Source of the DNA: Paragordius varius
Taxonomy: Eukaryota; Animalia; Nematomorpha
Direction: 5' to 3'
Assembly (NCBI GenBank): GCA_964247055.1
Contig: OZ176051.1
Coordinates: 14,260,001 to 14,324,000 of the forward strand
DNA length: 64,000 bases
Of this stretch, positions 14,301-49,240 are shown piece by piece (position 1 is the stretch's first letter; every line of letters starts with the position of its first letter). A program made the translations under genes and the position numbers. Under the pieces are notes generated by a model. It searched no databases. It had not been told where the DNA came from and saw nothing but the letters and a program-made list of their open reading frames with translations.

Positions 14301-14885
14301 GATGAATTTTGAAATATAAGATTGATATTCAGTGAAATAAATATATTTTACAGATAGGAAATTAGAATAAAATGGAGGGGGGTGACCATGTTTGATTACG
14401 CCATCAAATATTTTTTAGAAGAAGGTACCAAAATAGTATCGTTTATAAAACATTTTCAGTACACCTTAAAAAATTAAATTTTTGAAAAAAAAACATGAAT
14501 TTGATATTAATAGCATACTTTGTCGATGTCAACTACCCATTGTCGAGATATTTGACTGAATTCTTTAGCTTGACGCGCATCAAAGATAGGCCAACATAAT
14601 CTTTATTTTTAAATTATAAAAGCTAATATATACTCAAATTTTTTTAGGGTTTCTTTCCTATCATACAACTCAAATAGGTGATACATTATAAGTTGAAATG
14701 CATATCGGTTAGATGATTCAAATAGATCACTAATTTTCAATAATATTATATTTATACTCTGTCAAAACTAATTCCAAATCATTGTTTTTTAAAAAATCAT
14801 TAAATTTTAGTAGTTCCAAGTTTTTTCTAAGAATGTCACCATACTTTTCAATAATCTCCAATTTTTTGTGTGAAAAAGAATTCAT
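9653..14885 (-). CDS. HAUS6: HAUS augmin-like complex subunit 6, about 742 aa, 10 exons
   Basis: Exons: 14885-14758, 14729-14634, 14600-14519, 13779-13620, 12709-12427, 12018-11895, 11747-11650, 11411-11381, 11234-10851, 10495-9653. All GT-AG and phase-consistent (2229 nt). NRYAFQLIMYHLF...LCWPIFDARQAKEF...IFVCPTGFKVVRFLARFSRFV aligns by eye to the HAUS6 N-terminal domain (NRDAFHIISYFLF...CWPPFD...LFLSPGGPKFIHLMYHFARFV). The C-terminal half is unrecognised. Confidence 0.8.
11260..11301. repeat. (AT)n microsatellite in HAUS6 intron 8
   Basis: Direct run of TA. Similar runs at about 40203-40238, 49243-49278, 51868-51902, 53145-53170 and 57672-57722. Confidence 0.95.
14011..14255. mobile_element. 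About 220-250 bp foldback MITE family; other copies at 22877-23097, 24084-24336 and about 42245-42525
   Basis: Terminal inverted repeat consensus TA(C/A)CATTTACA(G/A)TTCAAATTCAC with homologous interiors. Three copies lie in introns of HAUS6 and SEPSECS. Confidence 0.75.
14601..14633 (-). other. 33-nt intron (HAUS6 intron 2)
   Basis: GTATATATTAGCTTTTATAATTTAAAAATAAAG. It has an in-frame TAA, and removal joins KKFE to LCWPIFD. Confidence 0.85.
14730..14757 (-). other. 28-nt intron (HAUS6 intron 1)
   Basis: GTATAAATATAATATTATTGAAAATTAG. Needed to join the ATG frame to the DLFESSNRYAF frame. Confidence 0.75.
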
Positions 14886-14948
14886 CAGAAAATTAAATTA
14901 TGCGCCGTTTACATTCATGCCTCATTACACATGTCTTCAAAAATTTAA
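14886..14948. promoter_or_regulatory. Putative bidirectional promoter, 63 bp between two divergent ATGs
   Basis: HAUS6 ATG at 14885 (-) and orphan ATG at 14949 (+). Each has an in-frame stop shortly upstream. Confidence 0.6.
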
Positions 14949-16030
14949 ATGAGATGTTTTGATTATTTAGAAAAAGTTATTGTACAATACAATACGGACA
15001 TAGAATTTAATAAATGTGAAACATATAACATTTGGAATAAAGTTTTATATGAACTTTATTCGATAACAAGAAGGGAATTCTATAATTTTTTATGTTTACC
15101 CTTGGAAAAATGCCCTTTAGGTAAAATATATTTAATATTTGTAAGTATTGATTGGATATATTAGCTTTAATACTTATCCATACAACACTCGTTTGTACAA
15201 AATTTATGCCTCATTGTTTTACGAAAAACTTTCTAAATTTCGATTCTTTATTTTTCCTTGTCCATATCATCCACAAATAAATGTAGACACTTGTGAGATA
15301 AATTTAATGTAAGCATAATATATTTTTATATTTTATTCTTTATAGGCAGACTTCATCCTTAAAATCTGGTCTCAATCAAATATTTCACATGTTTAATGAA
15401 ATATTTACTGATAGCAAATCTATTGCCACTTTTCCAGTAAACGTTGAGGCTTCACTTATTTTAGGGCAAAACTCAAACGCATTTACCGCCAAAGTTTTGG
15501 ATTTTGAATCTCAGCATAAAAATCTTGTTTCTTGCAACGAAAACCCAACATTCCAAGATCCAAATGAAATTATGTAATATTCATTGTAAAAATTATGAAT
15601 ATTAAAAGACATGTAGATTACAGTCATGTATCCTTCATATTAAATTTATTTTTTTTCGTTAAATGGGTATATATATTTGGTAAAGGATGAAAAAACAAGA
15701 GCTCTATGGTAATTCTTATACCTTTTTGATGATATATTGTTAAATACCATAGAGCTCTTGTTGTTTCCATTCTTTACCAAATATTTATATCCATTTAACC
15801 AAAAAAAATAAATTTTTGATAAAATAAGGATACATGATATTACCATTTTCTAATATATATGGTATTTTTAATGAAGATTACACGTTGACAATCAAAAACG
15901 TGTTGAAACTCCAGTTAATTTATTAGAATCTCGAATCCATCAAATGGAAATTTACAATGAGAAAGAATATGAATCGTGTTGGGATAATTTGGTTGCTGAT
16001 AATCATGAACATTCCTATTCTTGGCTTTAG
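14949..16030 (+). CDS. Hypothetical protein, about 238 aa, 4 exons
   Basis: Exons 14949-15120, 15146-15308, 15346-15573, 15877-16030 (717 nt). GT-AG introns of 25, 37 and 303 nt, phase-consistent. Sequence MRCFDYLEK...FIFPCPYHPQ...ESCWDNLVADNHEHSYSWL; no family recognised. Confidence 0.65.
15121..15145 (+). other. 25-nt intron (orphan gene intron 1)
   Basis: GTAAAATATATTTAATATTTGTAAG. The only GT-AG choice I found that keeps the frame open. Confidence 0.6.
15619..15840. mobile_element. About 225-bp palindromic MITE; second copy at 24976-25205
   Basis: Near-full-length hairpin with TCATGTATCCTT / AAGGATACATGA ends and internal AACAAGAGCTCT inverted arms. It fills most of a 303-nt intron. Confidence 0.8.
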
Positions 16031-16185
16031 TAGCTAACATTTTTATATTACCAAAAATAAATTATTACCTCTGATATTTTATATCTGTAAATTTTTTTGA
16101 GTAACCTTTGTGTTCCTTAGAAGGAAACTACAGTGTCCACAAAAAATATCCTGATTTAATTTATATCTTCTGATAGAAAAAGATT

Positions 16186-17310
16186 ACACTAGACAACAAA
16201 TTTTTCTGCCACTCGAGTTTTTTGCATTTTTTGATATTTAATATCATTTTAACAGTAAATCTGAAATAAAAATTATAACTCGTTGGAAGAATTTTGTATA
16301 ATTTGATTTTTTGATTATGCGCCCTCTTTATCAAAATTTTACTAAAAAATGTTTTTCTTTGAAAATATACAAGTAATGCCCATTTCTAATATATCATTCG
16401 AAAGAGTATTAAAAACTCTATAAAATGTATACTAATATGTATTACATCGACAGTTAATATTGGACACAAAGAGCGACAAACGCGCGAAGCGAGAGCATTT
16501 TTTTAATTATTATATTTTTAAAACTAATGGATGAAAATAGCTCAAACTTTGTTTAGATGGAGATGAATGTCCAAAAAAGATAACACAAAAAAGTTTTTTT
16601 TGATTAAAACATTTTTTATTGCTTTTATGTCACTCAAAACAGCCATTTTTAAGTTTTTTGTTTTTTAAAAATTACCATCTCATCAATATTAATTTATTTT
16701 CTTTACAAGGCTGATAATTTCGAAAATTTAAAGATAAAAACAAAGTTTAAGATATTTTTGATCTTTTATAGCCATTATGTAATAAATTTACAGTTATAAC
16801 TATGAATTTTAGTATCCACTAGGTAAAATATTTATGATAATAATAAATTTTATTAAAAAAGCAAACCAAAAGCTTTTTCAAACATTTTTTTTAATTTAAA
16901 TACTAATATAACCCTAAAAATTATATTAAAATAATTTATATGATTTACAAATCAGTTTGTCTGCGAAAATTCTTGACTTATTTAAGGATTGAAAATTTTG
17001 ACCATTTAAATCCAAAAAACTTTTACATCCGATGGATTTAAATGACTTACTACCATTTAAAAGATGCAGTTTTTTGCGCTCTTTCGAATGATATAAAATA
17101 CATGGCTTCATATCTAAAACTTTATATTTTCGAAATTTCGAGTTTAATGTTAAATTTGGGCCAAAAATTATCGATAAACTCTAATATAAAAAAATTCTTC
17201 CATGTAAGACCAATTTTCTTTTCAGATATACTAATTATGTACTTTAATGAAAAAATTTTTAAATTTACAAGAATGGCATTTAAAAAAAGTTAAAATTTGT
17301 TGTCTAGTGT
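16186..17310. mobile_element. Non-autonomous TIR element, about 1.1 kb
   Basis: Perfect 18-bp TIR ACACTAGACAACAAATTT / AAATTTGTTGTCTAGTGT. The interior is homologous to about 55920-56330 and inversely to about 985-1160. Confidence 0.75.
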
Positions 17311-18164
17311 TATCATTGTGATTTTGGTTTTTGCTTTTACTAGTGATTAACATGGTAACTGCTTCATATTAAAGCAAATGCTTAATTCTTAAAAATATTA
17401 CTATTTAAAAGTAAAACAGTATTTTTTTAAATAAAAATCTGGTAGGTACCTTAAAATACGCAAAAATCCGAGATTCTGTGATAAAATTGTTTAATATATC
17501 CACATCTATATGGTTAATAATTTATTTTAGTGATATTTTTCGTAACGAAGCTTTTCGCCAATTTAAAAATTAATCGCAAATTTTAATGTTTTTATGTGGT
17601 GACCACCAAGTGCAAATAATTTTTTTAAATTTCATGACTTTATCACTTTTTTGTCCGCTATGATATATTGGGGTAGTTTAACATCTCTGGGCTCAACTTG
17701 TAAATTAATCTTTGATAGTTGTTTTAATTAAAATCTAATTAACAAAAATTGTTGTTCTATATTAGATATAAAAGCTATGCGTCTATAATTTGAAACAGTT
17801 GTAAAACACGTCGGAAACTAAACAGCTGATTATAAAATAAATATCAAGTTTTTAATGGCAAAATTCAACCTGAAAGCTTATTAAAGTCAATTATTTATAT
17901 TTTGCAACCATCATATTTTGCCTACTTCATTAAAAAATTAAAAAAAAGCCAAATTTTTTAACATTTTCCAAAATCTGTATTATACGCCTAAAACGCTAAA
18001 GCAAGCATATGATAGTCATATTAATCGCTTTTAAATATATAATTACTTCAAAAGATCATAAAATGTGTCCTGCTGAAAGAGACGATTCCAATTTAAATTT
18101 ATCCACCCTAATAAAGATTCTATAAATAAGCCAAAATATCCAAATCAAATATAGATCTAGGTAT

Positions 18165-18283
18165 GCAGAAAAGGTTGTGACAACTATGGTCCCAACCGTC
18201 ACTGTCTTCACAGGATGACCCTTAGCGCCTTTCTACCGTTTTACACGCCTCAGGGCAGGGAGAAGGCACTTTCTTGTTGGTGC
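18165..18283. mobile_element. 119-bp GC-richer insertion with a 10-bp target-site duplication
   Basis: ATCTAGGTAT at 18155-18164 and 18284-18293. No TIRs seen. Confidence 0.6.
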
Positions 18284-18383
18284 ATCTAGGTATATACAGT
18301 AAAACATGTAGTCTTACATATAAATTAAATGAAATAATAGTATTAAATTATATGCAATTTACCCCCTATAAAAGTATTTGAAG

Positions 18384-21080: not shown

Positions 21081-21934
21081 ATGAGCGAAGGCAGAAAAAT
21101 AGATTTTACAAATTGTAACAAAAATATATGGATTTTAAAAGTATAATTTACTTAAATGCAGGTTCCAAAATACTTATCGGAAACATGGGAAACTCACGAT
21201 CAGGAGATTGGAAAATTAATGATAGACAAAACAAAGTAAACAATATAATTTAAACGAAAGAAAAGAACAAAAAGGTCCTGATATAAATTTTTATTCTTCG
21301 ACAACAAAATCAAATTTACCGCAAATTCACAAAGTATTTATGAATCCTATACCTAATAATACCCTCTTTATTTCATCTCATTACGAAAATGATGAATCCA
21401 ATCCACTTTCCTCCATTTATTTTGTCGAAGGAAAGGCTAGCCAAAAACTTGAGATTCGCCCCCAAACTAACTCTACTGAATACATAAACGTATATTGTAT
21501 TTTACATATATTTGGTTTTATTTATAAATTATCACATTTTTTATTTTTAGCTTAAAAAGGCTCAGTTTGCTATAAAAAACCAGCCAGTTAACACCGTTCA
21601 AAAATTGGATAAACATGTTCAAAATTACAAACCCGTTTCATCACACGCTATGTCTAAGAATTCATTTTTTGGTTCTGAAAGACCCACTCCTAAAGACATT
21701 ACTGTCGGAGCCAAGAAAATGCGATTAGACAAAGAACAAGTAATGGAAATTTTATTTACCGCTTTCGAAAAACACCAATTTTATTCGATCAAGGATTTGG
21801 TTAACATCACTGGACAACCTATAACTTATTTGAAAGAAATTCTGAATGATATATGCGTATATAATTTACGCAATCCGCATAAAAATATGTGGGAACTCAA
21901 ACTTGAATATCGTCATTATAATGCACCATCCTAA
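21081..21934 (+). CDS. GTF2F2: General transcription factor IIF subunit 2 (RAP30), 248 aa, 4 exons
   Basis: Exons 21081-21140, 21162-21235, 21261-21489, 21551-21934 (747 nt). IWILK|VPKYLSETW, NYKPVSSH and LFTAFEKHQFYSIKDLVNITGQPITYLKEILNDIC...HKNMWELKLEY match RAP30. AATAAA near 21968. Confidence 0.95.
21141..21161 (+). other. 21-nt intron (GTF2F2 intron 1)
   Basis: GTATAATTTACTTAAATGCAG. It has an in-frame TAA, and removal restores the conserved W-x-x-K-VPKYL. Confidence 0.9.
21236..21260 (+). other. 25-nt intron (GTF2F2 intron 2)
   Basis: GTAAACAATATAATTTAAACGAAAG. Required for the frame change between exons 2 and 3. Confidence 0.8.
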
Positions 21935-22296: not shown

Positions 22297-25200
22297 ATGG
22301 ATTTAGGTGTTTTGAGCACATTTTTACCATTAAATTACGTGACACAAGTAAAAGATGCCGAAAAGTCTATCCAAAAAATTATTAATACAATATTATATCA
22401 CGTAAAACATTTGTGTTTATATTGTTATAGAAAAAATTATTGGATTACCCGCTCTCAGACCACACAATTCGTCACATTTTGAATCTTTTTTCCATGATGG
22501 ACTCTAACAATTTTATAAATACGTGTGGTGTAGGGGAGCGTGAAGGACGAATGTATTCTTCATTAGTGGCCCAACGTCATTTTTAGTAATTAGGAATAAA
22601 ATATAAGGTTAAATATTATGATTTAGCTTATCACATGGTATTGGTAGGTCTGGACAATTAACTGAACTTCAGCCTAAAGCCTTGGGTTCCAGCTGTTTAT
22701 ACCAATTAACTAATTTGTTGGTAAAAGATGCCTTCGTAGTTGCAGGTAATCGATTTTTGCATCTATAACTAGCTTTACTTCCATAATTTATGGTTTTTAA
22801 ATAATTGTTTTTTTGATAATAATCGGAATTCTGAGTAGTTTTACTGCTTTGATGATACTGTATTAATGTTTTAATATAACATTTACAATTCAAATTAATT
22901 CTTGAACAATTTAAATTCACTGTTTTTGGGCTAATATAACTCATCATTGATATGAAATATATTCTTATGGCATAGTTTATTATTTCAGTATTATAAATTT
23001 CATTATTTAAAATTATATAGGTTTTTTTTAGCCTCATAAAAATTTATTTTAGGGGGATTTTGAATTGTTCAAGAGTGAATTTGAATTGTAAATGGTATAA
23101 AAATTAAATCCATTGCGTTTTCTGTTAAAAAATTACTGGGCGGAAGGTGGCAATAATACCTACGGACACCTGTTGTAAAAGACAATAAAAAAAAGGAAAC
23201 TTTATATAATATTTTAGCTTTTTGCCCTCTACAAATTTATTGGTTTTATTCCCTGAGTCCTGTTTTTATTTTGTCGTCGCTCTAATAGTTATTGATTGGT
23301 TAAATTACTTTTGATAATAGTTTAATTTGCCTTAGGACAGTTAATAAATTGACACATCCTACGAATACAAGAAAGCTAATATAGCATTTGTGTATTAATA
23401 CAAAAATTTATAACCGGGGTCCCTACACATCACTCTTGACTCCAAACAACACTGGTAGGAATAGCGTGATTGACTTAACTGAATTTAAGGCAAGTTTATA
23501 TATATATATGAGCAAGAATGAAATAAGATTTATATAAGATAACCTATAATCTGGTTAAAACAACAAGAAAAATAAAAGTAAAAGATTGCATTAAGAACCT
23601 ACAAGAAGTACCTTAACTCGATGTTAATTTTAATTGCCTAAAATTACTGTGATATTTGCAACGTAACTCCTACCATTTAAAAATTATTAAAGCTGGCTGT
23701 TTAGTTTGGAAAACATTTTTGGCCCTAAATTTAACAATCTATAAATACATATATATGACATAGGATTAACCAATGTTAATTCATGCCTCATCGTTCCATT
23801 AGCTACGGGCATGGCACTAACAATGTGTTTTTTAACCCTGAAAAAGAGTCGCCCAAAAGCAAAATATATCATTTTCTCCAGGATCGATCAAAAATCATGC
23901 TTTAAAAGTATCCTAACCGCCGGTAAGATGTATGAAAGTGTTAAATGTATATAATTAAAAATAATGTCATAAGGGCTGTTTTTGTAAATTTTCGCACTTT
24001 TATAAACAATCATATTTCAAAAAATTCATATTTAAATTTTTTCGTAGTGGCTAATTAAAGTCCAAAGAACTATTGTTGATATATACCATTTACAGTTCAA
24101 ATTCACTCTTGAACAATTCAAATACACCCTAAAAATAAATTATATGTGTTCGAACTAATATAACTCATTATTAATATAAAATCTAAGTTTATGGCATAAT
24201 TTATTATTTTTTCAGTATTATTTTAATTTAAAACAAAATTTTAAAAATATATTAAAAAATAGGGAATTTTTAATCTTTAAAAACATGAGGGGGGAATTCG
24301 AATTTTTTAAGGGATGAATTCGAACTGTAAATGGTAAATATTTTGCAGGATTTATCCCTATAATCATTGAGGGCCAATTAACCCACGATGGAACGGATGA
24401 TGAAATGCGTATAAAGCTCGACGACAATATAAAAAATTTCACGGATTTTATTACAAAATTTATTAATGTTAATGCCCAAACATTATCATTACCCATTGAA
24501 TCTGAAGATGATATTTTATGTTTTCTTTCCACCACTTCGTGTTTTGCTCCACGCGGTTCTGACAACATTTCAAACATTGGAATGTTTTGTGCCCACGCCA
24601 ATATTGTCCACATTGTAAATAATGCGTATGGGATGAATTCATTAACACTCATTCGTCAAATTAAGTAAGTAAATTTCAATTCTGTACACTTGTAATTATT
24701 CTTTGTTATCAAAATTTTATTTTATAATATATTCGGTTTATAAAAATTTTTTCGAGCAAAATAATTTATATTTAATATAAATTGTGTGTACGTTGTTGCT
24801 TTAAAGGGTCTTAATGAACGAAATTTCCGATAAGGTCCATTTATATGCAATATCTTTTAATTAAGTATTTTTTTTGAAATTTTTAACACTGTTTCCTCTA
24901 AAAACAAACGTTTTGCCGGCATATTTTGTTGGTTTGGAAAGCTTTTGTACAAATTTTTCGAGTATTAAAATAGATTCATGTATCCTTTATTTTAACAAAA
25001 AATTTATTTTCTTTCTTTAAAGCGGTATAAATATTTGTTAAAAAAATGGAAAAACAAGAGCTCTATATTTAAAATATCATATTCATTAAAAAAGTATCAG
25101 AATTACCAGAGAGCTTTTGTTTTTTCCATTCTTTATTAAATATTTATGCCCATATAACAGGGAAAAAAAATAAATTTTTGATAAAATAAAGGATACATGA

Positions 25201-28200
25201 CTGCACATATAAATAAGAAACAGTTTGTCAGACTTCCCACAAAATACCCATATGCATATTTTCATTTTATTGCGGAAAAATTATTTATACATTGATTGAA
25301 GTTATACTGTTGAAATCACAGTGATGCTTGGCATGTCTAACTAATATAATTAATATTATTTTTTTACTTATATGATAACTAGTAAAGCAGTGTTAAAGGG
25401 TGCCCGCATAGATGCTATGGTACAAAGTTGCGATAAAAATTTTATGGTACCAGTCGGCGGAGCCATTATCAATGATTTTAAGCCCTTGAAGAAAGCCAAC
25501 AAGGGTAAAAATAGAATATTTTAAGCAAAAATAAAATAATTTTGTACGAACTTTTTGTTTCCCAGGTAATATGGATAAGAATGGAGGAAATAACTCGAAA
25601 ACTTGTAGTACAACAAACCAAAATAAACGAAATTTCATCGAAGAAGTGGCGCATGTATACCCAGGTATATCTATTAATATTTTGTCTATCATTTTTCTCA
25701 ATGGAAAAAACCAACTATTAAACTCTTAAAAACATTAAAAAAGATTTCAAAATTCATGTAGTGAGCGAAAAATAATTTTATTATTGTCTCACATTTAACT
25801 TTAAAGGGAGGGCCTCAATAACACCATCCCTTGACATTTTTATCACCTTATTATCGATGGGTTCACAACGATATAAACAATTACTGATATCTCAGCTTGA
25901 AAACTTTGCCTATTTCAAGTCTGAACTGGAAAAAGTTGCACAAACATACAATGAACGAATCCTAAACACCCCAAATAATCCTATATCAATCGGTTACTCT
26001 TTAAACTTTTTTTATCAATTTGATATGAGGTTGCTTAGATAATAATTTTTTGCCTTAACAGTATTTTTTTGTGAATTACTATGAATGCAATATAAAATAA
26101 AATAGGATTCATAAGTACATATATTTTAATGACTTTTATGTATTTAATCATTTTCATAGTTTTTACCTCCAATATTTTAGTTATTCATTATTTTTATTCT
26201 ATTTATATGTGTTTTAATTATATCTTGTAAAAAAATTTTACGATTTTTTAGAATTATAGAATATAATAAATATTATTGTATAAACGCCCCTTTAAAACAA
26301 AACAGTAATATTGATTTATGACATTTGGTTTGGGCGCAAAATCAAAATATTTTCTAAAATCCAGCGTGTATTCGTTTCAATGTAATGTGTATTATGATAT
26401 CCCCTTTTCACAAAATGTTACTAAACCATAATGAAAAATACTATGTAAGCCTATGAACAAAACTAAATTTTATCACAAAAGTTAGCATATATATATATTT
26501 AGGTTTTTTTTCTTGCAATCTGGCTTGCTTTTTTGCTAACATTTTTTGTGATATGCGCGTGGTATTGGCAATCTAATTGCGATTACTATTATTATAGATA
26601 TGGGACATGAGACTATTTCTTTTAAATGCTACTAAAATCAGACTTTAAATCAGGCGTGCCCAACATATGGACATTAACAAATATTTCATAAACTACTACT
26701 ATTTATAACATCCTAAATTTGGAAAATTTAAAATTTACATTTGTTTGTTAAACAAAATCAATTCTACTTGAATTTTGTAAAAATTTGTAATTAAAATTTC
26801 TCTTGAGCTGCAGAAATACTTTGGAGGGCCGCGTGTTGAGCACCCCCTGCTTTAAATAGCCGACTTGTTTAATGCATATATTTAATCCTAATCGCAGCCG
26901 TACAAAATAAGTAGTTTATAAAAAAGGTTTCCAAACTGTGTTAAAAAATTAGAAGTTTGAAATTATACTCAACGATTAAAATTCTTACAAAAAAAAATCC
27001 GTAATATCTATTTTCTAAAGATTTTTACATTATGTCAATTTTTAGGTTTCGTTTGTTAGCTTTAGGACACACAATTAGAACAGATAAATGCAGAATGCGA
27101 AATTTTGTGATTAAAAACCAAATGCACCAAAGAATTAATTATTAATAATTTTATGTCATCTTTTTTGGTTAAAGCTGCTGGTATATAAAATATTTTTCGA
27201 AAAAAAACTTTGTGATTTTACCAATATTTATATACAAAGAATATAGCCGCTATTAACCTAAATTAATTTATATTTTTTAGCCAAAGATTTGAATTTTTTT
27301 ACTACTTTAACACTACACTATTGAAGCAATGGGTATAATATAGCAAAAAATGTGGTATAGCATTTATTGTTTGATAAAAACTCAGATGCTATTTAAAACA
27401 TCCTTTTGTGAAGCATCGTTTTTACAAAAAAATGCAAACAAATTCCTCCAAATTTTATTCATTTGGCTTTAATTTTTGCATTTTGAAACCACTTCTAAAA
27501 TATCAAGGCTATATAATAGATGTTCTTTTAAGTATTTATCCAAGTCTATCAAACATTAAACTTTTTTCCAAAATCTTTCATAAAACATATTTTTTATACT
27601 AAATATATGTACTTCATACATAAATATTATTATATACATTTTTCATGCAAAAACCTCATTTTTCCAAATGCAACATTTTTTCAACCAAACGCATCATTTT
27701 GTTACTAATCACTACCGTTTTCTCATTTAAGCTAGGCTAGAGCTAGCAAGAGGGCTAGGTTCATAAATATGACTCGAACTATCTAAATTGGTTGGTGGTT
27801 GGTTTTTCCTAAGTCGTAAACGACTTTTTGGATATAGTTTTAACTATTTCTTTCCATTTTTTTCTATCTTTAACCGCTATATTGAGCTCTTTCAGTGTCA
27901 TTTTGGTCTCTTCTTTTATCATATCCAACCACCTCATCGGTGGTCGGCCTCGTTTCCTTTGCCCTTCTACCTTCCCAAACATTGTATCTTTCTCCAGAGA
28001 ATTCGATCGCATGACATGACCAAAATATGTTAACTTTCTTTTTAGAATTATCTCCATGATGTTTGTTTTAGGTTTTATTTCTGTAGTTAGACTTTCATTC
28101 TTAATTTTATCCTTCCAGGTGTATCCTAGCATCCTACGCCAGCAGCTCCTTTCAAAAGCCATGAGCCTTTCTTTGTCCCTTTTTCTGAGAGTCCAACTCT

Positions 28201-31200
28201 CACCTCCATATGTGATGACCGGGAGAACGAAACAGTAGAGTAATCTTTTTTTGGTTTCAACTCCTACGCTTTTGTTTTTCCAAATCTTTATTAATTTGGT
28301 CATCGCTTCTCTACCCAATCCTATTCTCTTTCTGATGTCAGGAGTTGAAGACCCATCCTCTGAAATTATTGCGCCCAAAAACGTTAACTGTTTAACTATT
28401 TCTATTTCTACTCCTTCTATTATAATTGTAGGCTTTTTTCCTGTACATAATATTTTGGTTTTGTTAGGATTAAGCCTAAGACCATACCTCAAACTTTCCT
28501 TTCGAATCTCTTCAATCAATTCCTTCAAATCATTTGCACTTTCAGCTATAAGAGTGGTATCGTCTGCAAACCTTAAATTATTGATTGTTCTCCCTCCTAT
28601 TCTTACTCCAATATTTTTACCATCCAACTTCCTCATTATCATTTCTGTGCACATATTGAACAGATAAGGGGATAAGCAACACCCTTGTCTGACTCCTTTC
28701 AAGATTGGTATTTCGTCTGTGTCCCCCGCTGGTGTTCTAATAATCGCTCTTTGTTTTACATACAGAGAGCATCTTATTAAGTGAGACGATACCCCTACTA
28801 ACTTTAATGTTTCCCACAAGGAGTCATAGTTAATTGAATCGAATGCTTGTCTGTAATCAATAAAACACATGTATAATTCTTTCTGGAACTCTTTTGATGT
28901 TTCCATTATCCTTCTCATGTTTGAGATATGGTCTCTTGTGCTTTTTCCCTTCATAAATCCGGCTTGATTTTCTGGTATTTCTGTCTGTATGATACTGTGC
29001 ATTCTGTTTTGTATTACTTTTAGTAAGACCTTACTAGCGTGGCTAATAAGAGATATGTTCCGATAATTCTCGCATTGGAGTACATCTCCTTTTTTATATA
29101 TTGGGAGATATACAGATGATGCCCAATCGTTTGGCCACTCACATGTTTCCCACACCTTTTGACATAACTGGTGTAACTTTTCAACGGGAATAGCTTTTAT
29201 GAACTCTATTGGGATATTGTCTAATCCCATCGCTTTGTTGTTAGATTTGTTTTAAGGCTAATTCAACCTCCTCTCTTAATATATCTGGATCACGTTCTTC
29301 TTCTTTTAATTGCAACACCTTTGTTTGAGGAGCCTGATAGAGTTTTTGGGTGTATTCCTTCCATCTTTCTCGTACATCTGTTTGTTTGCACAATATGGTG
29401 CCATTCTCTTTTTTAATCTTTTGTGATGATATAAAAGGTTTATGAGTCATTTGCTTCAGTTTCTGGAACATTGGTTGCATTAATCCTTTTTTGTTATTTA
29501 ATTCCACTTCCAAACATTGTTTATTAAGAAAATCTTCATAATCCTTCCTTGTTTGTCGTTGAAATTCTCTGTTATATAATTTTACCATTTTATTATCACC
29601 TCTTGATTTAGCTTTTCTCCCCTTTTCTGCTATCTCTATACTCTTTTCTGATATCCATTTGTTATCTTTCCTCTTTACTCTCTGCACTTTTTCTTTTGCC
29701 ACTTCATTAACAACATTTTTTATCGTTCCCCATAATTGTTCTGAGCTATATCCATTGTCCAATCTTCCTAATCTATCTTTGGTTTCTGTTCTAAAACTAT
29801 TTGGAATGTTCCGAGTGTCATATCTGTATATCTGTTTAACCTTATTTTTAATTATTTTAAGTTTGATTTTGGTTATTAAAAGCTCATGATCGCTAGAGCA
29901 ATCGCTGCTTTTGCTTGTTTTGGTATCGATTATAGAGCTTTTCCATTTTTGAGGACACATTATGTAATCAATTTGATTCTTATATTTACCACATGGAGAG
30001 GTCCATGTGTATAACCTCCTATTGTGTTGTGGAAACCATGTGTTGGTTATCATCATCTCATTTTCTTGACAAAAATTGATCAGTGCTTCCCCGGCCTCGT
30101 TTCGTTCTCCCAATCCATATGGCCCGACTATTTGATCTACTCTACCTCTACCAACTTTGCTGTTCCAATCCCCTCCTATGATAATCATATCTCCTTTCTT
30201 CGTTTCATCCAAAACTATTTGCAACGTTGCATAAAAGTCCTCTATGTCTTCTTTGGGAGCGTTTGACGTAGGAGCATAGACTACTATGTATGTAAATTTA
30301 GGTGGCTTGGCATTCAGCCTAATACTCATGATTCTGGGTGTATATGGTGTATAACTAATGAGACTTTTATTTAATTTGTTTTTTATTAATACTGCAACGC
30401 CTTCAGATTTCTGGTCATCTCTCCCCGATCTTAACAATGTATAATTTTCGTTTTGTACTTTCGCGCTACCTTTTTGCTTGGTTTCCGTTAGACCCAGTAT
30501 ATCTATGTTCAATCTTTCCATTTTCTTTTCAATTATCACCTGTTTGGTTGATGTTAAGGAACGTACATTCCAGCATCCAACTTTGAAAATTCTTGTTAAG
30601 TTCATTTAGTAAAACTATTTTTTGGCAGTAATAAACGAGGGTGGTTTGCCATTGCCTTCCCTCTCACTTACCCTCTTTACAAAAAATAAATATCTAGAAT
30701 AATTAAAATTAAAGAGTAATCTTTATAAATGTTGTTAATTTGGATAAATTATAAATATTGATATTTTGCTCTGTCTGGCAATCATAAAGGAAAAATATAA
30801 AGAAATTATGGCTAGGCTAGTAAAAATAAAATAATTAGGCACCAAGGAGTAGAGAAAAAAAAAAGAGAGAGATCTGTATAACAATGATTTTTGATGACTT
30901 AAGAATTATGTTACTCTTTAAATTACATACTTAGCATACAAATAAAATAAAAACTCTACAAAACAAAGAAAAAGATTAATAATTACTAAAAGGAAACCTA
31001 TTTTTTAAATATATTTATAGTATATAATAAAATAATACTATCCTTGAATATCCTCCCGCTTTCAATCACATAGTTTCATGCATGAAAAAAAAATCTACTA
31101 TCTAAATTATCTATACCATTGCTGATATCTCAACAGTTTTTTCTTTCTCGTGTGAGCTGGCAACTAAGGACACATTGGTCGAAATGGCTTTTAAAAAATC

Positions 31201-32277
31201 TGTCATTATTTTCATTTTTGGAACACTACTGCGTTTTCCTTCGCTCTTTTGCGTTTGATTGAAAAAATGTTACGTTTGCTTAAAAAAAATGATGTTTTTG
31301 CATGAAAAATGGTATATAAACTTTTTTACTGCCTCATATAGCCATGTCATTAGATAACATTATGGGACAAAACAACATATCCCAGCAAAACGCCGCATCC
31401 AACACAAAGCCAAAAAAATCAGTAACTGAAATTGGAGCAATGTTATATACTCGTCGAGTTACTGGTGCGCGGTAATCCTTATTTATTCCACATTTTAATT
31501 GTGTTTTATTTTATTGTGTTTAAAAAGCGAAAAATATTGAAAGTTACGTTGATGATATTTATAGATAACTGAGAATATTTTCCTTTAACATAGCTAGTTC
31601 ATTAAATTATCATATTATTGTTACCTGCTGATATTTAACAAGTTTGTTGTGTCAACTTTATCACGACCGACATATTAGGAATGGTTTTTTTTTCATTAAG
31701 AGAGAAAATAAAATAAAATTTGACAAAAAATTTAACCCAAAATAAAAACTATAATGCAAAAAAATGGAAATGAAACCACAACTTATTTATCGAAATCCGT
31801 TTTTCCATCAAAGCAAGCAGTGAACTTTTTTAACAATACAAAAAATTAAACACACCTAATACACTTTTTGTCCTTAAATAGAGTGTTGTTTTACTATATA
31901 GTATGCATGCACATTTATGCTGGCCTTCTTTTAACATTATTGTTGGCCAATTTGTATGTAATACAATAGTATATGGGTAAAAAACAAAGGAGAATTAAAA
32001 TTTAACAATTTTTTCCTATCTTACTACAACATTAAATTTGATTTAATTATTATATGTGCATACTATATTTTTTTAATATCTATGTAGAGTGGTATACCCA
32101 ACGTCAAAATCTACAATCATTGATGGCTATAATTTTGTTAATTGGGGATCTCATAACTCAAAATATTCTTATGCATACTTAACTGTAGCCTGTACCTTAG
32201 GACTTGAACGTAACACCATTGATAAATTTTGTGCGAAATTACGTAATGTATTGAAAGATTTTACCTCAACAAACTAG
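22297..32277 (+). CDS. SEPSECS: O-phosphoseryl-tRNA(Sec) selenium transferase, about 526 aa, 10 exons
   Basis: Exons 22297-22401, 22431-22585, 22627-22745, 23764-23922, 24349-24664, 25383-25504, 25566-25664, 25807-25992, 31342-31471, 32088-32277 (1581 nt). Motifs MDSNNF...[58 protein letters not shown] (PLP lysine) and YPGRAS. Confidence 0.95.
22402..22430 (+). other. 29-nt intron (SEPSECS intron 1); intron 2 at 22586-22626 is 41 nt
   Basis: GTAAAACATTTGTGTTTATATTGTTATAG. The frame shift is needed to reach MMDSNNF. Confidence 0.85.
26651..26849. mobile_element. hAT MITE, 199 bp, in SEPSECS intron 8
   Basis: TIR CAGGCGTGCCCAAC / GTTGAGCACCCCCTG. Perfect 8-bp TSD CTTTAAAT on both sides. Confidence 0.85.
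27785..30670 (-). mobile_element. Near-intact RTE-clade LINE (APE endonuclease + reverse transcriptase) with one frameshift, in SEPSECS intron 8
   Basis: ORF 29241-30605 is APE ([33 protein letters not shown]). ORF 27809-29230 is RT ([27 protein letters not shown]). CCAA-like 3' tail; 5' motif GAAGGCAATGGCAAACCAC. Confidence 0.95.
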
Positions 32278-32331
32278 TACAACGTAAATATATATACACC
32301 ACAAATAAATTTATATTATATAAAAATTAAT

Positions 32332-34579
32332 TTACAATGTATGCCAAAACAGTGATATTGCCTTAATCATCCCCACATCAGTGTAATTAATGTAATAAAG
32401 TAGGCCCAGAGTAGTTATAGAAACCGCACTAACACCCATTTTAGTTAACGGGCCCAGGAAATTCCAGCGGTTATAACGGTCCCATCGTTCAACATAATCA
32501 CTCATTACAGTTTCCATTCCCCTACAAATTATTGATGATATATATTGGTTTTTTAACACTAAAAAACGTTAAAAATATTATACAAATTATTTTAATTGTT
32601 AAAAAATACGAGAAAATCAGTTTAAAATACTATATACTATATATAAACATTTTTTAATTCCGTTGTTGTAACTCTTTAGTAGAAAGAATTTTTTTTCATA
32701 TTTTACTATACGAACCAAATTCCAAAATTAACATTATTATTAATCAAGTAAATAACTCAAAATTAAAACACATTTGTGAGTAAAGGCATTTGTTTTAAAC
32801 CAGGGATGTCCAACACAAATGGCTTGAAGATCCACATTTTCGACCTGAAAAATCGGAAGACCCACATTTGAATTAATATCATTTGCACTTCAAGAGTGTC
32901 CTTGAACACTTCAAGTTGGTCCTTAAAATTTTTATTTAACCATTATTTATGCATGTATTTTTTATTTTATTATTTTTTGACCTAATTTTCTTAATTTATA
33001 TTATATATTTTATCATTTAAAAATAAAAAAATTTATTCAAAAACCACTTTTTTATTAAAAACTAATTTTTTTCCAATTAAAAAATTATTTAATTTAAATG
33101 TATTTAATGAAAAATTGTAAATAATACCTAGAAAACTTATAAATTTTTAATTAGGTGTTAAATTCTCATAAATATCTAATATTAATTACAGAAATTAAAA
33201 AATATTTTCTCAATGATTAAAAGTTTACATTGATTTAAAATGTTAAATAATTAAAAATAGGTCAAAAACGATACAATAGATAAATGATTTACGATTTGAT
33301 TGATAAAAGTAAAAAACATAACAAAAACGTCAAAGGATTAACTTAAACTGTTCAAGAAACTTGAAATGTTTAAGGACCAACTTGATGTTTTCAAGGACAC
33401 TCTTGAAGTGTAAATGTTATATATCTGCTATTGATGAAAACACAAATATAGAATATATCACAATGAATTCTATTCAAGAAATTAATGAATTTATCCACCA
33501 CTAAATTCCTGAACTTGTTTGTATCAAATTTTAAATATTTTAAGAATATATTAGAAATATATATATGGGCTACCGAGGAATCTTTTATAAATGTAAAATA
33601 AAATTTCACCTCTCAATTAAGATCAATATGAACATATTTGTTTTACAATGACACTTAGAAATGTAGTTAATATCATCAGTTTTAAAGCATAAACATTAAT
33701 AATCTATTGAAGATATTGATACCAAATTTGAGATATTATTATACTGCGGTTTACACAAATATGGCTCTTTTAATAAATTAAAAACATTTACCAATTCAGA
33801 ATTTTTTCGAATACGTAATATATAACTTCAATAATATAGGTATAACTATATTAAAAATGAGTATGATTTTCAGATATATGGCTCTCTCACTAAATAATTA
33901 CCATAAAAGGTTTTCCAATGGCAAGTATTATAAAGATTTTCAGATTGTAAAGGAAATGATAAAATAAATGTCATAAAAATATTAATAACATCGAATTTTA
34001 TGAAAATCAAATTAAAATCTTTTTATAGAAAATTAACACTCAAAAATAAAACTTTTTGCCAGAAATTTTTTTTTAAATATTTTTAAAAATATACTCAAAA
34101 TTTCGGAACCACTTGTTGGACGCCCCTGTTTTAAACCCTAATCATTAGCGGCATAAAATTAAAATACGTTAAAAGATTATATATATTTTTCATTTAAGTA
34201 TTTCCATTCTATATTTTTAAAATTATTTAGGAGATAATTTAAGTGTTAAACTGAAAGATTTAAATTACCAATGTGAATGCAATATTAATGTGGTAGCTAA
34301 CAAATAATCCATAAATGGTGCTTGATAAAAATAGGCTAAAGGATACATAGAAGCAAGTCCAACCGTAACAATCCTTTCAATCGTCCAATGTAATGCCGTA
34401 TGATCTTTTTCCTCGCCTTTAATTTTCAATACAGTTGGAATGGCATCTATAATAAAAAAATAAAATTAACTTGCCACTGTAGATTGAAAACGTGGAAATT
34501 GTGATAGTTTAAAATAGTTTTGTTGATAAATAAAGTTAGGATAGTTTTTATTTGCAACAACCCGAAAAATTAGAGACAT
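32332..34579 (-). CDS. SDHD: Succinate dehydrogenase cytochrome b small subunit (CybS), 158 aa, 3 exons
   Basis: Exons 34579-34471, 34446-34269, 32521-32332 (477 nt). Presequence-like N-terminus, ALHWTIERIV, MDYLLATTLILHSHW|GMETVMSDY and LYYINYTDVGMIKAISLFW match SDHD. Confidence 0.92.
32801..34128. mobile_element. hAT non-autonomous element in SDHD intron 2, carrying a nested MITE at 32877-33421
   Basis: TIR CAGGGATGTCCAAC / GTTGGACGCCCCTG. Perfect TSD TTTTAAAC. The nested MITE has TCATTTGCACTTCA ends and about 21-bp subterminal repeats; a second copy is at 52568-53140. Confidence 0.85.
34447..34470 (-). other. 24-nt intron (SDHD intron 1)
   Basis: GTTAATTTTATTTTTTTATTATAG. It has an in-frame TAA and phase 1 on both sides. 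A weaker upstream donor (GTTTTC) would give a longer intron. Confidence 0.7.
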
Positions 34580-39998: not shown

Positions 39999-40198
39999 AC
40001 TTCTAGTTTTTTATTCCATTCTATGCTTCAAAATACCATAAAACACGGTATATTTTTGCAGATAATATTTTTAAACAAATACGCATTTTTTTAAACTATA
40101 CTCTAGCATATTCGATAGCGTTTATTTCACAAGAGGGCGAATATTCGAGTTAGGATAGTTTAATATATACAAATATTTTAAAATTTTTTACCACGAAA

Positions 40199-40241
<43 letters not shown>

Positions 40242-40299
40242 CAGTAAGGCCCAAAAGGCATCAATATATATATTTTGTTAAGATTTTTTTTGCTGTATA

Positions 40300-44569: not shown

Positions 44570-45560
44570 TTTTTAGTAATAATGTAATTATGAAGAGAAA
44601 TTGTTTATTATTTTACAGACATTGTATCGGCCATTTGGCTCATCTCTTAGATACATAAGAAAGCGGTGGTATAAAAATGATTGTCTTTTGGGTAATCCAT
44701 TCCACAATCCCTTTTCCAATGTCTTCCAAATTATTTTAGTACTGCTATCTTTACTCTGCTTAGGTGTGCCACATTGATGCAAGGAGGTTATAGTTAGATG
44801 ACCCTATGTTAGAAGAATAGGGGGACGATTTTCTCACCGAAGCGATTTTAAGGGATTACTGGTTATGTTGTGTGAGATGGTAGCTTTTTCAAGAGCGAAA
44901 TCACTTTGCCATATTTTTTGGTCTTTCCAGTCGATTTTCGATTAGTGAAGAAGCGTTGTATAAATATGACTTAATATGCTTCGAAAATTCATAATAAATA
45001 CCGTTCTCATACAGACACCGAGTATCGTCTTGCCGTTGGTATTAATTTTGACCAAACGACCTCACAACATCATGGCTCGGATTTTTCCTGATCTTTGTGT
45101 TAATAAAACAATTACGCGTCACAGTCAAGATATTCTACGAAAAATATTCCCTTTCGCGACGTCAAAGCACGAATCTACACTAGAGCAATTTTTTTCGATT
45201 TGACGCTATATTGTGTGAGGCTTATTTACCGAGTTTATTGGTGTATCTCATTGCTATAAGTGACTGCTGATTGTTTATTGTGATGCATAAAAAATTCTTA
45301 TTTCTGTGGAGTTTGAGTGGGTGATTCATCCAATAACTCTTGCCCGTGATAGTGTTTGCAGTTGTGTGGTCTACCAGAGCGTCCGCTGTCTACATTGGAA
45401 TGACAACTCAAAGCTATGTATCACATGATTTAATCGATGGATTATGCCCACCATATTTTTTCACTAGCATACGATTTAACTTCTCTTATTTATAATAAGA
45501 AAAGCAATGCCTACCGCAAATATACTTTTTGAGGTACGAAATTTGACAATAAGTGATCAA
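44570..45560 (+). mobile_element. Highly decayed Penelope-like element (RT + GIY-YIG remnants)
   Basis: CLLGNPFHNPFSNVF (about 44681-44727) resembles the RT G..MGNPLSP.LANIF motif. VVY (45366) followed by VYIGMTTQ (45388-45411) resembles the GIY-YIG motifs. Confidence 0.5.
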
Positions 45561-46871
45561 AATTAGACGCTATCTTTTGACTGTCAAATTGTGGTCTTAT
45601 GAAGGTGAATGGCATATCAAGGATGACTCAAAATAATGCATCTGGTATAATATGTAAATTATAAAAGTATTTTTTGTCCTTAAGTGTTAGCACCTTAACA
45701 TGTTTTATAAATGACGAGATGGTCCTGTTCTTTATATTTATATCTCGGTGCCTCTTGTCTGCCAATATTTGTTCTGAAAGCCTATCACCTACTTTATCAA
45801 AAAAAAGTCAGCTACCCTAAACCTTCAAGAAGTCCCCTAAATTTGTATAAAGTTAAGGACTTTGGCTGTGATTAAATTATAATAATAAAATGCACATTGT
45901 TTTTTATCTTAGGTGTCATATAAAATATTTATAAAATTTTTCATTTTTATCGGTTCCCAAACCAAAATACATTTTTTTATTTTGATGGTCTTTCAAGGAA
46001 GGATATAATAAAAATATTAATATCAAAATTAATTTATTTTTATAATTCTCATTATTTTACATATAGCTATATATTTTTTGATATGTAAAGCTTAGCTCTC
46101 GAATCTTGGGCGAAAAAAATAATGAAAACTAATTACCAATACAATAATATAAACATTTTATGAATAATAATAATTGAATATATAATGTTTTAGAGATATA
46201 CTCCAAAACTTTTTTAATATATTAAATTATTGCACATAACTCTACAATTTGTTGCAAAAATCTTTGACCAATATGAGACTTGAGAATATTTCATCGTTTC
46301 ATATATGAATTATTATAGTAGAATTAATACATGCATTGTTAAAGTAAGCCACATTACAAATATTAATATAAAAAATAATAAAAAAGAATAATCATGATAG
46401 TCTTATAAAAAAATCAATCATTTTTGCATTTTTCTTCACTCACGTTTTTACACAAGCCAGTTAAAGACTATCCTGATAAATTTATTATTTCGATTCTCTT
46501 CAATCGTTTTGAAAAAATGTGTGATAAAAATTATTAATTTTATATGATTCCGGAATAGCTAATTGATATATATTTTTTCCATAGTTCAATTTGTATTGGA
46601 TTACTGATTAGTTTTAATTAGATATATACAATAGTTTCAAATTTTATAGATTGCTCTTCGTATTTTATGGTATGCGATTTGTATGTTTTTTCAATTCTCT
46701 CGTTATAGTTATATGTGCATGGTATCCACTAATTTTTTGCACAAGATTTTTTTCATATTTATCTGTAAAACCAATAATATTGTACAAAATGAATAAACAA
46801 CCTTAAAGCTGATATAACTGAGATTCATATCTATTTTTTGTGTATCACGACTTAAATTTTTCACCATAAAC

Positions 46872-49240
46872 ATGCCAATCGCAAACAGTGGATTAATTAA
46901 GGGTCCAACAACAGCCCCCCTGTCACCAAATTTAAAAAATGATCCTAACAAGAAGAAGAAAAGTATTTTGCCCTCATCTAAAAGTAGCCTATCTGTCGGC
47001 ATAACTAAAAGCGGCACTAATAGTCGGAACTTCGAAAGTATGTTGAATATGAATAGTAAAAATGAAAACATATCAAACAACACTAACATGAAGGCGAACA
47101 AAAATGTTAATATGGTTGTTGGGAAAAAGTTGCTCTGTAAAGTTCAACTCTTGGATGATTCTATCATTCCTTTTCAAGTTCCGGTATATGTATAAATATA
47201 ATATATATATATGTAGTATATATATATATATATATAATTTTCATGATATATAATAACAAACATGAATAACAGAGATTCATATCTCTTTTATATATGGGTT
47301 TATGTATTTTGGAAATTTGAAATAAATAGAATTTGGTATGCATATATCCGAAATGCCTTATAATAGTCACATAATAAATATTTACAAATTATTGATAAAA
47401 AAGTACAATCGTGGTATAGATAAGTTAGGGTTGGACTCGCGATAACTTTGTATGACCGTGAATGACAGTTTTTTAACATAAATCAGGCAAAAGCTTTCTA
47501 AACATGTGTTTACGTGATATAAAAAATAATGATATAGATATAGAACTTTTGTTATAAAAAAATGAGATTCATTTATTTTGTTTTTATGATTAGTTAGGAG
47601 GTATTACCATTTTTAAAGAAGTAAAAATGGTTAATTTCGATTATTATACAATACACAAATTTTGTCTAGTTACATAATGGAAATTCTAAGTAGTGGTCCA
47701 GAATAGCAGTTTAAATATGACTTTTAAATAAACTTCATTGCATGCATGATTCTATCAGAAAAATCTGAATTGAAAATTATATCAATATCTCTCACTAATT
47801 TTTTATCTATATAACATTTTAATTATTTATCCATAACATATAATAATATAATATTTCATCTTCCTATACATTATTTTTTCATGAACTTTATTATCTTTTC
47901 ACAAAAATATTTTGTACTTTATATAGTTAAATTCAGAACAGCCCTCTAATTGCCTGACCTATTTAATTAACTAACTAATATCTCTATATAAAAATTATTG
48001 TTACAATAAATAAATAAATAGGATTTCTCATTGCATAATATATTAAATACATAAATACATTATTGGAAATAAAAAATGCAATAATATGGAGTATTAAATA
48101 AATGATACAACAAGCACAGTATTGGAATTTAGCGTGCATAAGGCATAATATTTAACAAGCAGGATTAATATTAATGATTTTTAATGTAAAATCGTAATGC
48201 AAAATTTATCCAATGGTTTCTACCTAATGAATTAATTGGAAATAATATTTTTAACAAATTATTTTTGGCAACGATATATAATTAGTTAAATTAATGAAAA
48301 GTATAATTTATATAATTGCAAGATGTAGACGCTACACCCCATATACAGTAAAACTGAAATTATACGGACAAAACGTAAAATATTAAGACAAATATTTTTT
48401 TCTAGATAACCATACTTTTTCAAACCTTATTTTTTCCCATATAAGCTATGTAATTATAATTGTTATATATAGAATTGTGTCAATTACATATCAATTTTAT
48501 AGATTGCAATTTGAAATGAGTTATTTTTTAAATAATGGAGTTAAAAAAGTATGGTTTTCTTATAGGAAAAATTTTTTGTCCTTATATTTTTACATTTTGT
48601 CCGTATAATTCCAATTTTTACTCTATTTATAAAAACAGATTTTTCTCGTATTTGGTTTTTTATATCATATTCGCCTAAACAATAAGTATTAAATATGATA
48701 TTTTATAGCAGTTTTATGCATTAAATTCTTCAATTTCTAGAATTGACTTTTTTTTATATATAATAAATTTCAATGCGTTAAATTAAATATACACCTAATT
48801 TGGATTTCAAAGTAAATATTCGTATAAAGGAATTTATAAATATTAATAAGATTAGTACAATGAAGGCGTTTCCATATCCTAACACAACACAATTTCTAAA
48901 ATATTTTAAAAATTTATATTTTTATCTTGTTTAGTACCGATATAAGGCTATTTAAAAGTCAAATAGAAAAGTAACAACTGTTTTATTTATATATTATAAT
49001 ATAAACTCTATAAATATTTCAAAATTTGAAAATTTAACCATGCAGTATAAATATTACTTTTGAATATAAGGCAACCATTTTAGCAATGAAAATATTTAGA
49101 TTGTCCACATAGAAAAAAATCATTGATAAAACAGAGTTTAAAATTTATTAACTAGAGATAATCGATATGGTAAAAATAATTATTGGTTAAAAATTTGCTT
49201 TTACCATGATAGGTCAATATTCAGGGCTACGTATGTGTTT

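Follow-up and report, generated by a model that had tools for sequence, protein, structure and literature searches.

The closest described counterparts of the introns analyzed here are the microintrons of flatworms, for which a concentration near the transcription start was described by Ershov et al. (2019, PMC6530080) and by Protasio et al. (2012, PMC3254664), the latter citing Berriman et al. 2009. This 5′ clustering holds genome-wide, and the splice sites are near-consensus, with the polypyrimidine tract often absent (PMC6530080), while intron definition is among the ideas put forward for these introns (PMC6530080; PMC3254664). Hence, the statement of an earlier sequence-only reading of our hairworm DNA, that no description of such a pattern was known, does not hold. 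In the hairworm genome papers, as far as they are accessible, introns go unmentioned. Flatworms (Opisthorchis felineus, Schistosoma mansoni, and others) resemble the hairworm Paragordius varius in that a repeat-rich genome contains both kilobase introns and a discrete, ultra-short class of GT-AG introns, and in both the short introns are located preferentially near the gene start and adjacent to each other. A second short class is found at ~90 nt in O. felineus, and at ~61–73 nt in the hairworm window, which is the whole 64,000-nt stretch of DNA that was analyzed. The tiny introns are shorter in the hairworm (21–41 nt) than in flatworms, where they peak at 37 nt and are defined as <75 nt. The evidence from flatworms covers whole genomes and is backed by RNA, while the hairworm pattern is known from the DNA sequence of six genes, and the hairworm belongs to Nematomorpha within Ecdysozoa, while flatworms are Platyhelminthes. 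The hairworm pattern is probably the same phenomenon as the 5′-clustered microintrons of flatworms, with the introns even shorter and the host an ecdysozoan. As the pattern was already published for flatworms, the hairworm is a second animal lineage showing it rather than a new kind of thing.

Uniformly tiny introns of ~15–35 nt with canonical ends are also present in Paramecium and other ciliates, in dicyemids, and in the Bigelowiella nucleomorph, where intron retention leads to a stop or a frameshift, as it does for the hairworm tiny introns. These are, however, compact genomes in which introns are almost without exception tiny, wherever in the gene they lie, while the hairworm has tiny introns at gene starts and others of up to 11 kb. 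In most animals and plants the first introns are the longest, a rule reportedly described, for example, by Bradnam and Korf in 2008. Intron length is position-dependent under this rule as in the hairworm, but with the opposite polarity.

The models of six genes in the window, containing 23 introns, were rebuilt as follows, with the offset of selected introns given as genomic distance from the ATG, upstream introns included, so that the ATG and not the transcription start site was the reference point.

13606–14885, minus strand: 5′ part of a HAUS6-like gene, ATG at 14885; exons 14758–14885, 14634–14729, 14519–14600, then from 13779 downward; introns 14730–14757 (+128, 28 nt), 14601–14633 (+252, 33 nt), 13780–14518 (+367, 739 nt).
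14949–16030, plus strand: hypothetical gene X, head-to-head with HAUS6, ATG at 14949; exons 14949–15120, 15146–15308, 15346–15573, 15877–16030; introns 15121–15145 (+172, 25 nt), 15309–15345 (+360, 37 nt), 15574–15876 (303 nt, repeat-rich).
21081–21934, plus strand: TFIIF-beta gene, 248 aa, ATG at 21081; introns 21141–21161 (+60, 21 nt), 21236–21260 (+155, 25 nt), 21490–21550 (+409, 61 nt).
22297–32277, plus strand: SepSecS gene, 526 aa, 10 exons, ATG at 22297; introns 22402–22430 (+105, 29 nt), 22586–22626 (+289, 41 nt), 22746–23763 (+449, 1018 nt), 23923–24348 (426 nt), 24665–25382 (718 nt), 25505–25565 (61 nt), 25665–25806 (142 nt), 25993–31341 (5349 nt), 31472–32087 (616 nt).
32332–34579, minus strand: SDHD (CybS) gene, 158 aa, ATG at 34579; introns 34447–34470 (+109, 24 nt), 32522–34268 (+311, 1747 nt).
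46872–61401, plus strand: 5′ part of a FERM-domain gene, ATG at 46872; exons 46872–47183, 58570–58674, 61094–61230, 61304–61401; introns 47184–58569 (+312, 11386 nt), 58675–61093 (2419 nt), 61231–61303 (73 nt).

The data showed that the polarity of intron length, with tiny introns near the ATG and longer ones downstream, is real in this window. All the pairs of offset and length named in the sequence-only reading were present in the sequence when the gene models were rebuilt, and its claim that every intron within 300 nt of the ATG is tiny was borne out, with 8 of 8 such introns measuring 21–41 nt. Its further claim of a single small intron among 21 beyond +300 stands for the 15 of them that were rebuilt, where the only tiny one has 37 nt (at +360) and the other 14 have 61–11386 nt; the rebuilt set covers 23 of its 29 introns, while the later HAUS6 and FERM introns are outside the count. 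For HAUS6 these introns were left out since no Pfam support was found for the downstream exons. The enrichment of tiny introns (≤41 nt) within +300 (8/8 versus 1/15) was significant in Fisher's test (p = 1.8e-5). The tiny introns form a discrete class, as nine of the 23 introns have 21–41 nt, none has 42–60 nt, and the rest have at least 61 nt. In HAUS6, gene X, TFIIF-beta, and SepSecS two consecutive tiny introns are introns 1 and 2, while in SDHD the only tiny intron is intron 1. Among the tiny introns the length increases with the offset from the ATG (rho 0.76, p = 0.017), which agrees with the rise in length that had been noticed in the 5′ zone. The size boundary around +300 is not sharp, because the gene X intron at +360 has 37 nt, while the SDHD intron at +311 has 1747 nt. 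One further gene possibly counts against the polarity through a candidate intron.

6590–8506, minus strand: histidine acid phosphatase gene (Pfam His_Phos_2) with a 594-codon open reading frame at 6590–8374, a possible 36-nt first exon at 8471–8506, and a candidate 60-nt intron at 8411–8470 (+36).

A search for phosphatase homologs with which to check this first exon gave no match at E ≤ 1e-5.

These observations are probably best explained by a position-dependent architecture with two classes of introns, in which the 5′ introns are intron-defined and near-minimal, while the downstream ones are inflated by TEs. Introns within ~300 nt of the start codon, usually one or two adjacent ones, would be kept at a near-minimal 21–41 nt. 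Being close to the pre-mRNA's 5′ end, they would be recognized across the intron (intron definition), and thus could be free to shrink to the lower limit of the spliceosome, while insertions lengthening them would not be tolerated. Downstream introns would depend on a recognition mode that requires at least ~60 nt. As TE insertions would be tolerated there, the size of these introns would drift upward, and interspersed repeats and retrotransposons would have expanded most of them to kilobases. An intron at the boundary could take either state, for example the one at SepSecS CDS position 260. The two causes put forward in the sequence-only reading, a cap- or promoter-proximal splicing mode and a TE-excluding, deletion-prone 5′ zone, are both possible.

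The second of these causes could act alone, if promoter-proximal open chromatin made TEs avoid the first ~300 nt and the bias toward small deletions were stronger there, with splicing the same throughout. Consistent with this explanation, the long introns are full of repeats, while the short ones are repeat-free. Interspersed repeats, defined as sequence recurring elsewhere in the window, were found in 10 of 11 introns of at least 300 nt and in none of ≤142 nt. SepSecS introns 3–5 contain very high-copy DNA seen as read-depth peaks, and SepSecS intron 8 contains a retrotransposon.

27812–30605, minus strand: RTE-like non-LTR retrotransposon, antisense to SepSecS, with endonuclease and reverse transcriptase open reading frames (Pfam Exo_endo_phos, RVT_1).

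The rise of tiny-intron length with distance is also what a decaying deletion pressure would give, and no significant difference was seen between the splice signals of the tiny introns and those of the rest. On the other hand, TE exclusion alone is insufficient, because even among the introns lacking repeats those near the start are smaller (21–41 nt) than those downstream (61–616 nt; exact Mann–Whitney p = 0.001), and a purely mutational cause leaves the apparent ~60-nt floor of the repeat-free downstream introns unexplained.

The comparison with another hairworm also speaks against a purely mutational cause. The highest exon-level identity to SepSecS in tblastn searches was that of XP_065318724.1 from Gordionus sp. 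m RMFG-2023 (Nematomorpha), with 55–76% over the exon matches, and the base composition is similar, with a GC content of ~27% in the window and 26.93% in the Gordionus assembly. Introns are present in both at SepSecS CDS positions 105, 260, 379, and 538, with lengths in the window and in Gordionus of 29 and 40, 41 and 2206, 1018 and 885, and 426 and 821 nt, respectively. Hence, the intron at position 260, which is located at ~+290–300, is tiny in one hairworm and has 2206 nt in the other. A point against the two-class architecture comes from Ndr, annotated at the same Gordionus locus, in which an apparent 15-nt first coding exon is followed by >4.8 kb without a coding-like open reading frame, and therefore a long intron can adjoin the ATG, if this annotation is right. 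Neither TFIIF-beta, SDHD, HAUS6, nor gene X adjoins SepSecS at the Gordionus SepSecS locus, and single-exon and profile searches for Gordionus TFIIF-beta listed proteins from arthropods, priapulids, and others, with none from a hairworm. Overall, we consider a mutational or chromatin cause alone unlikely.

Next to the two-class architecture, the pattern could also reflect obligatory cap-proximal splicing, in which introns of less than ~45 nt would be spliceable near the cap only, for instance via the cap-binding complex, and not at all downstream. It agrees with this idea that all the tiny introns validated by homology are located within 289 nt of the ATG, and that the pyrimidine tracts are strong (0.92) in both downstream 61-nt introns as compared to 0.33–0.83 in the tiny ones. 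Flatworm microintrons often have no such tract (PMC6530080). However, the signals as a whole carry no sequence mark of a separate splicing mode, which counts against the two-class architecture as well. All rebuilt introns are GT-AG with donors that are mostly GTA[AT], the donor hexamers are alike in tiny and other introns, and the mean pyrimidine fraction over the 12 nt preceding the acceptor AG is not significantly different (p = 0.41; 0.58 in tiny introns versus 0.64 in all others). Gene X, if it is real, is also at odds with obligatory cap-proximal splicing through its 37-nt intron at +360. Ciliates and dicyemids splice tiny introns at any position, which further speaks against a mode restricted to the cap, and we regard this explanation as quite improbable.

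It is very doubtful that the pattern is a modeling artefact, with tiny introns sought or invented at ATG joins and overlooked downstream. Six of the nine tiny introns (29 and 41 nt in SepSecS, 21 and 25 nt in TFIIF-beta, 28 and 33 nt in HAUS6) lie inside ungapped, junction-spanning alignments to homologs or Pfam profiles. The full-length SepSecS alignment with 13 homologs is gap-free at every junction. The TFIIF_beta_N profile gives one unbroken match across TFIIF-beta junctions 1 and 2, the TFIIF_beta HTH domain sits in the last exon, and BLASTP showed colinearity with crayfish, priapulid, and insect proteins. In both these genes the downstream exons follow the homologs colinearly, with no additional tiny intron required. 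The spliced HAUS6 peptide gives one continuous Pfam HAUS6_N match (positions 22–72) spanning both tiny junctions, and exon 4 picks up the profile at positions 92–125. Every tiny intron, if retained, would cause a frameshift or an in-frame stop. Of ten sequencing runs found, the four containing this stretch proved to be DNA, with contigs that read through the tiny introns unspliced, and none of the sampled words of this stretch were present in the RNA-labelled runs of the species. The 24-nt intron of SDHD and the 25- and 37-nt introns of gene X, which favor the artefact explanation by lacking homology support, follow from open reading frames and splice-site logic alone. In SDHD, exon 2 matches Pfam CybS positions 23–76, and the tiny intron was called because this exon needs a start codon; exon 1 contains no acidic residue, in which it would resemble a mitochondrial presequence. 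Gene X, modeled from open reading frame continuity and GT-AG sites only, is the least certain model and may not be a gene. Its last exon has weak similarity to APOBEC_C (E 4.4e-5; PDB APOBEC3G, E 0.03), deaminase motifs were looked for and not found, and for exons 1–3 neither a Pfam family nor an Atlas signal was found.

Blind scans of the whole window for tiny introns joining open reading frames gave 910 and then 294 candidates, the latter for 18–45-nt GT-AG segments between two frames of at least 25 codons. This is far too unspecific in DNA of 27% GC, and it shows that such junctions easily arise by chance in an AT-rich window, as an artefact would require. Three downstream candidates in known genes were rejected, as they lead into non-coding-looking sequence, with a better exon further on, which again argues against overlooked introns. 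The segment 12399–12426 in HAUS6 leads into a 28-codon hydrophobic open reading frame ending in a stop, and 15574–15608 in gene X leads into a repeat. The sequence after 58675–58706 in FERM has no FERM likeness; this candidate was rejected in favor of the exon at 61094, which has the expected WLDP...KFY.PDP motif and precedes the FERM_M exon. In this gene exon 2 matches FERM_N positions 17–46, and exon 4 matches FERM_M positions 7–47.

Chance in a sample of six genes, combined with a neutral ratchet in which tiny introns present a very small target and stay tiny anywhere, while target size favors the growth of already long introns, is highly unlikely given the within-gene permutation result (p = 5e-4, or 1.5e-3 with gene X left out) and the genome-wide 5′ clustering in flatworms (PMC6530080).

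If the pattern is genome-wide, hairworms would be a second, unrelated animal lineage with tiny introns at gene starts and TE-filled later introns. Two independent lineages would open the unexplained flatworm pattern to comparative study, with parasitism, AT-rich and repeat-rich genomes, and perhaps trans-splicing as candidate common traits. Trans-splicing is known in flatworms, while for hairworms no report either way was found in the literature. A more speculative reading, which we hold to be rather doubtful, is that hairworms and flatworms independently evolved position-dependent splicing, in which the first ~300 nt would accept introns of 21–41 nt without the normal branch-to-acceptor layout, with a floor of ~60 nt elsewhere. 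If this were true, it would point to a general, still unrecognized coupling of transcription start or capping to the lower limit of intron size. On the practical side, standard gene finders miss such introns, which leads to truncated protein N-termini; the Gordionus SepSecS model XP_065318724.1 is without ~44 N-terminal residues that are present in another, longer product of this gene.

Six genes of the window were rebuilt from the sequence, and the position of each intron was expressed as an offset, which in the sequence-only reading proved to be the genomic distance from the ATG inclusive of any earlier introns. The window was AT-rich, with a GC content of ~24–35%, mostly near 27%, and contained ordinary animal genes as well as an RTE-like retrotransposon, while no tRNA genes and no Rfam matches were found in it. 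All rebuilt introns had GT-AG ends, and the models reproduced every offset and length listed in the sequence-only reading.

Introns of the six rebuilt genes (offset from the ATG:length in nt, window coordinates in parentheses)
ATG 14885, minus strand: HAUS6-like gene; +128:28 (14730–14757), +252:33 (14601–14633), +367:739
ATG 14949, plus strand: gene X, hypothetical; +172:25 (15121–15145), +360:37 (15309–15345), then 303 nt
ATG 21081, plus strand: TFIIF-beta gene; +60:21 (21141–21161), +155:25 (21236–21260), +409:61
ATG 22297, plus strand: SepSecS gene; +105:29 (22402–22430), +289:41 (22586–22626), +449:1018, then 426, 718, 61, 142, 5349 and 616 nt
ATG 34579, minus strand: SDHD gene; +109:24 (34447–34470), +311:1747
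ATG 46872, plus strand: FERM gene; +312:11386, then 2419 and 73 nt

The data confirmed the polarity of intron length in the window. All eight introns within +300 were 41 nt or shorter, as the sequence-only reading had claimed for introns near the ATG, versus one of the 15 located further downstream (Fisher p = 1.8e-5). Shuffling of the lengths within genes gave p = 5e-4, and the exact probability was 1.5e-3 when gene X, the least certain of the models, was left out. Among the nine introns of 21–41 nt, hereafter called tiny, length increased with offset (rho 0.76, p = 0.017). Position fits the data better than intron rank; in the FERM gene, intron 1 lies at +312 and is 11.4 kb long despite its rank. 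The boundary of the zone is fuzzy, with +289:41 and +360:37 on one side versus +311:1747 and +367:739 on the other.

Artefact and chance are unlikely causes of this polarity. Retention of any tiny intron would lead to a frameshift or an in-frame stop. The four sequencing runs containing the region were DNA, and their contigs were continuous through the tiny introns, with no joint. A blind scan showed that chance junctions between open reading frames are common in the window DNA, and therefore we relied on junctions validated by homology, from which we infer that the tiny introns are spliced. The 526-aa SepSecS product aligned from end to end with 13 homologs, and none of the nine junctions showed a gap. 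The spliced N-terminal peptide of TFIIF-beta matched Pfam TFIIF_beta_N in one stretch spanning both tiny junctions, and the 248-aa product was colinear with crayfish, priapulid, and insect proteins. Similarly, the spliced HAUS6 peptide gave a single uninterrupted match to positions 22–72 of HAUS6_N that spans the two tiny junctions, and the exon past the 739-nt intron resumed at positions 92–125, with exactly the number of intervening residues needed. In SDHD, exon 2 matched CybS, and the 24-nt intron was proposed because this exon lacks its own start codon; exon 1 has no acidic residues in 36 codons and resembles a mitochondrial presequence. Gene X was modeled from open reading frames and splice sites only. 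Judged by such sequence comparisons, we grade six of the nine tiny introns as solid, one as reasonable, and two as uncertain.

The SepSecS gene could also be compared with that of another hairworm, Gordionus sp. m RMFG-2023, the assembly of which has a GC content of 26.93% (preprint 10.1101/2023.06.26.546503). Its protein XP_065318724.1 had the highest exon-level identity to the SepSecS gene of the window in tblastn (55–76% over the exon matches). Judged through SepSecS, the window thus belongs to a hairworm (Nematomorpha) that is a relative of Gordionus but distinct from it. Introns are present at identical CDS positions and phases in both genes (105, 260, 379, and 538), with lengths of 40, 2206, 885, and 821 nt in Gordionus and 29, 41, 1018, and 426 nt in the window. 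The shared positions indicate that the tiny introns are old introns rather than new insertions. The 5′-most intron is tiny in both worms, while the one at about +290–300 is tiny in the window (41 nt) and long in Gordionus (2206 nt). One Gordionus SepSecS protein model is ~44 N-terminal residues shorter than the longer product of the same gene, as would be expected if a small intron had escaped the gene finder. At the same Gordionus locus, the annotated Ndr gene has an apparent 15-nt first coding exon (ATG...GTAAGT), followed by >4.8 kb with no coding-like open reading frame (23670–28559 in coordinates of that locus). This start could represent a long intron right at the ATG or an annotation error; hence, long introns adjoining the ATG may exist.

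The longer introns were distinguished by their repeat content. Sequence repeated elsewhere in the window was found in 10 of the 11 introns of at least 300 nt, but in none of the 12 introns of up to 142 nt, and in no exons. Within each of SepSecS introns 3, 4, and 5 there is a segment of enormous depth in the DNA runs (22924–23107, 24028–24395, and 25132–25315; summed contig depth 10^5–10^6 versus a few hundred alongside); these segments represent short repeats of very high copy number, probably MITE-like. Intron 3 of gene X harbors a related inverted-repeat element at about 15630–15850. SepSecS intron 8 contains an intact-looking RTE-like non-LTR retrotransposon (27812–30605, minus strand, antisense to the gene) with two long open frames, for an endonuclease of 454 aa and a reverse transcriptase of 473–480 aa, and a single stop region between them; it may be a young copy. 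These elements indicate that the long introns are inflated by transposable elements (TEs). This load explains only part of the size difference, as the repeat-free introns were 21–41 nt near the start versus 61, 61, 73, 142, and 616 nt further on (exact Mann–Whitney p = 0.001).

The donor hexamers were similar between tiny and other introns, and pyrimidine content before the acceptor did not differ significantly between them, the strongest tracts being those of the two 61-nt introns. The best reading of the mechanism combines intron definition with TE tolerance. Introns near the 5′ end would be recognized across the intron and could shrink to a lower limit in a zone where insertions would not be tolerated, while downstream introns would need about 60 nt and would tolerate TE insertions. 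The earlier interpretation, which invoked a cap- or promoter-proximal splicing mode or a TE-excluding, deletion-prone zone, is partly supported; a purely mutational or chromatin cause of the polarity, or an obligatory cap-proximal splicing mode, is possible but less probable. Small indels segregate in short introns: run X5, from a different sample labeled as this species, showed 1-nt and 3-nt deletions and several substitutions in the 61-nt intron of TFIIF-beta (21490–21550), and the flanking exons differed by substitutions only.

The sequence-only reading knew of no description of such a pattern, but 5′-clustered microintrons have been published for flatworms (Ershov et al., PMC6530080; Protasio et al., PMC3254664). 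The literature searches retrieved no account of small hairworm introns, and the word "intron" was absent from the hairworm genome texts that could be consulted; within this literature, the pattern appears unpublished for Nematomorpha.

Several neighboring features were also observed. The histidine acid phosphatase open reading frame (6590–8374, minus strand; 594 codons) contains an RHG motif and matches Pfam His_Phos_2; none of 5560 word-sharing candidates was related to it at E ≤ 1e-5, so the protein is highly divergent and rich in low-complexity sequence. In gene X, the final exon (15877–16030, plus strand) shows weak similarity to the C-terminal helices of AID/APOBEC deaminases, with an E value of 4.4e-5 for Pfam APOBEC_C, slightly above the family cut-off, and of 0.03 for PDB APOBEC3G; no similarity was found for the preceding exons, and HxE and PCxxC motifs were absent from all plus-strand frames of 14881–16100. 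Gene X could be deaminase-like but degenerate or inactive. Its start codon (14949) and that of the HAUS6-like gene (14885) are divergent and separated by only 63 nt; provided that gene X is a true gene, the pair either has a common minimal bidirectional promoter or overlaps at the 5′ ends. SepSecS exon 7 (25566–25664) carries a ~25-residue N/K/T-rich insertion before the conserved YPGRAS motif; this insertion is missing from non-hairworm homologs and partly common to Gordionus. The SepSecS and SDHD genes are convergent, with stop codons 54 nt apart (32275–32334), and hence their 3′ UTRs must be either very short or overlapping.
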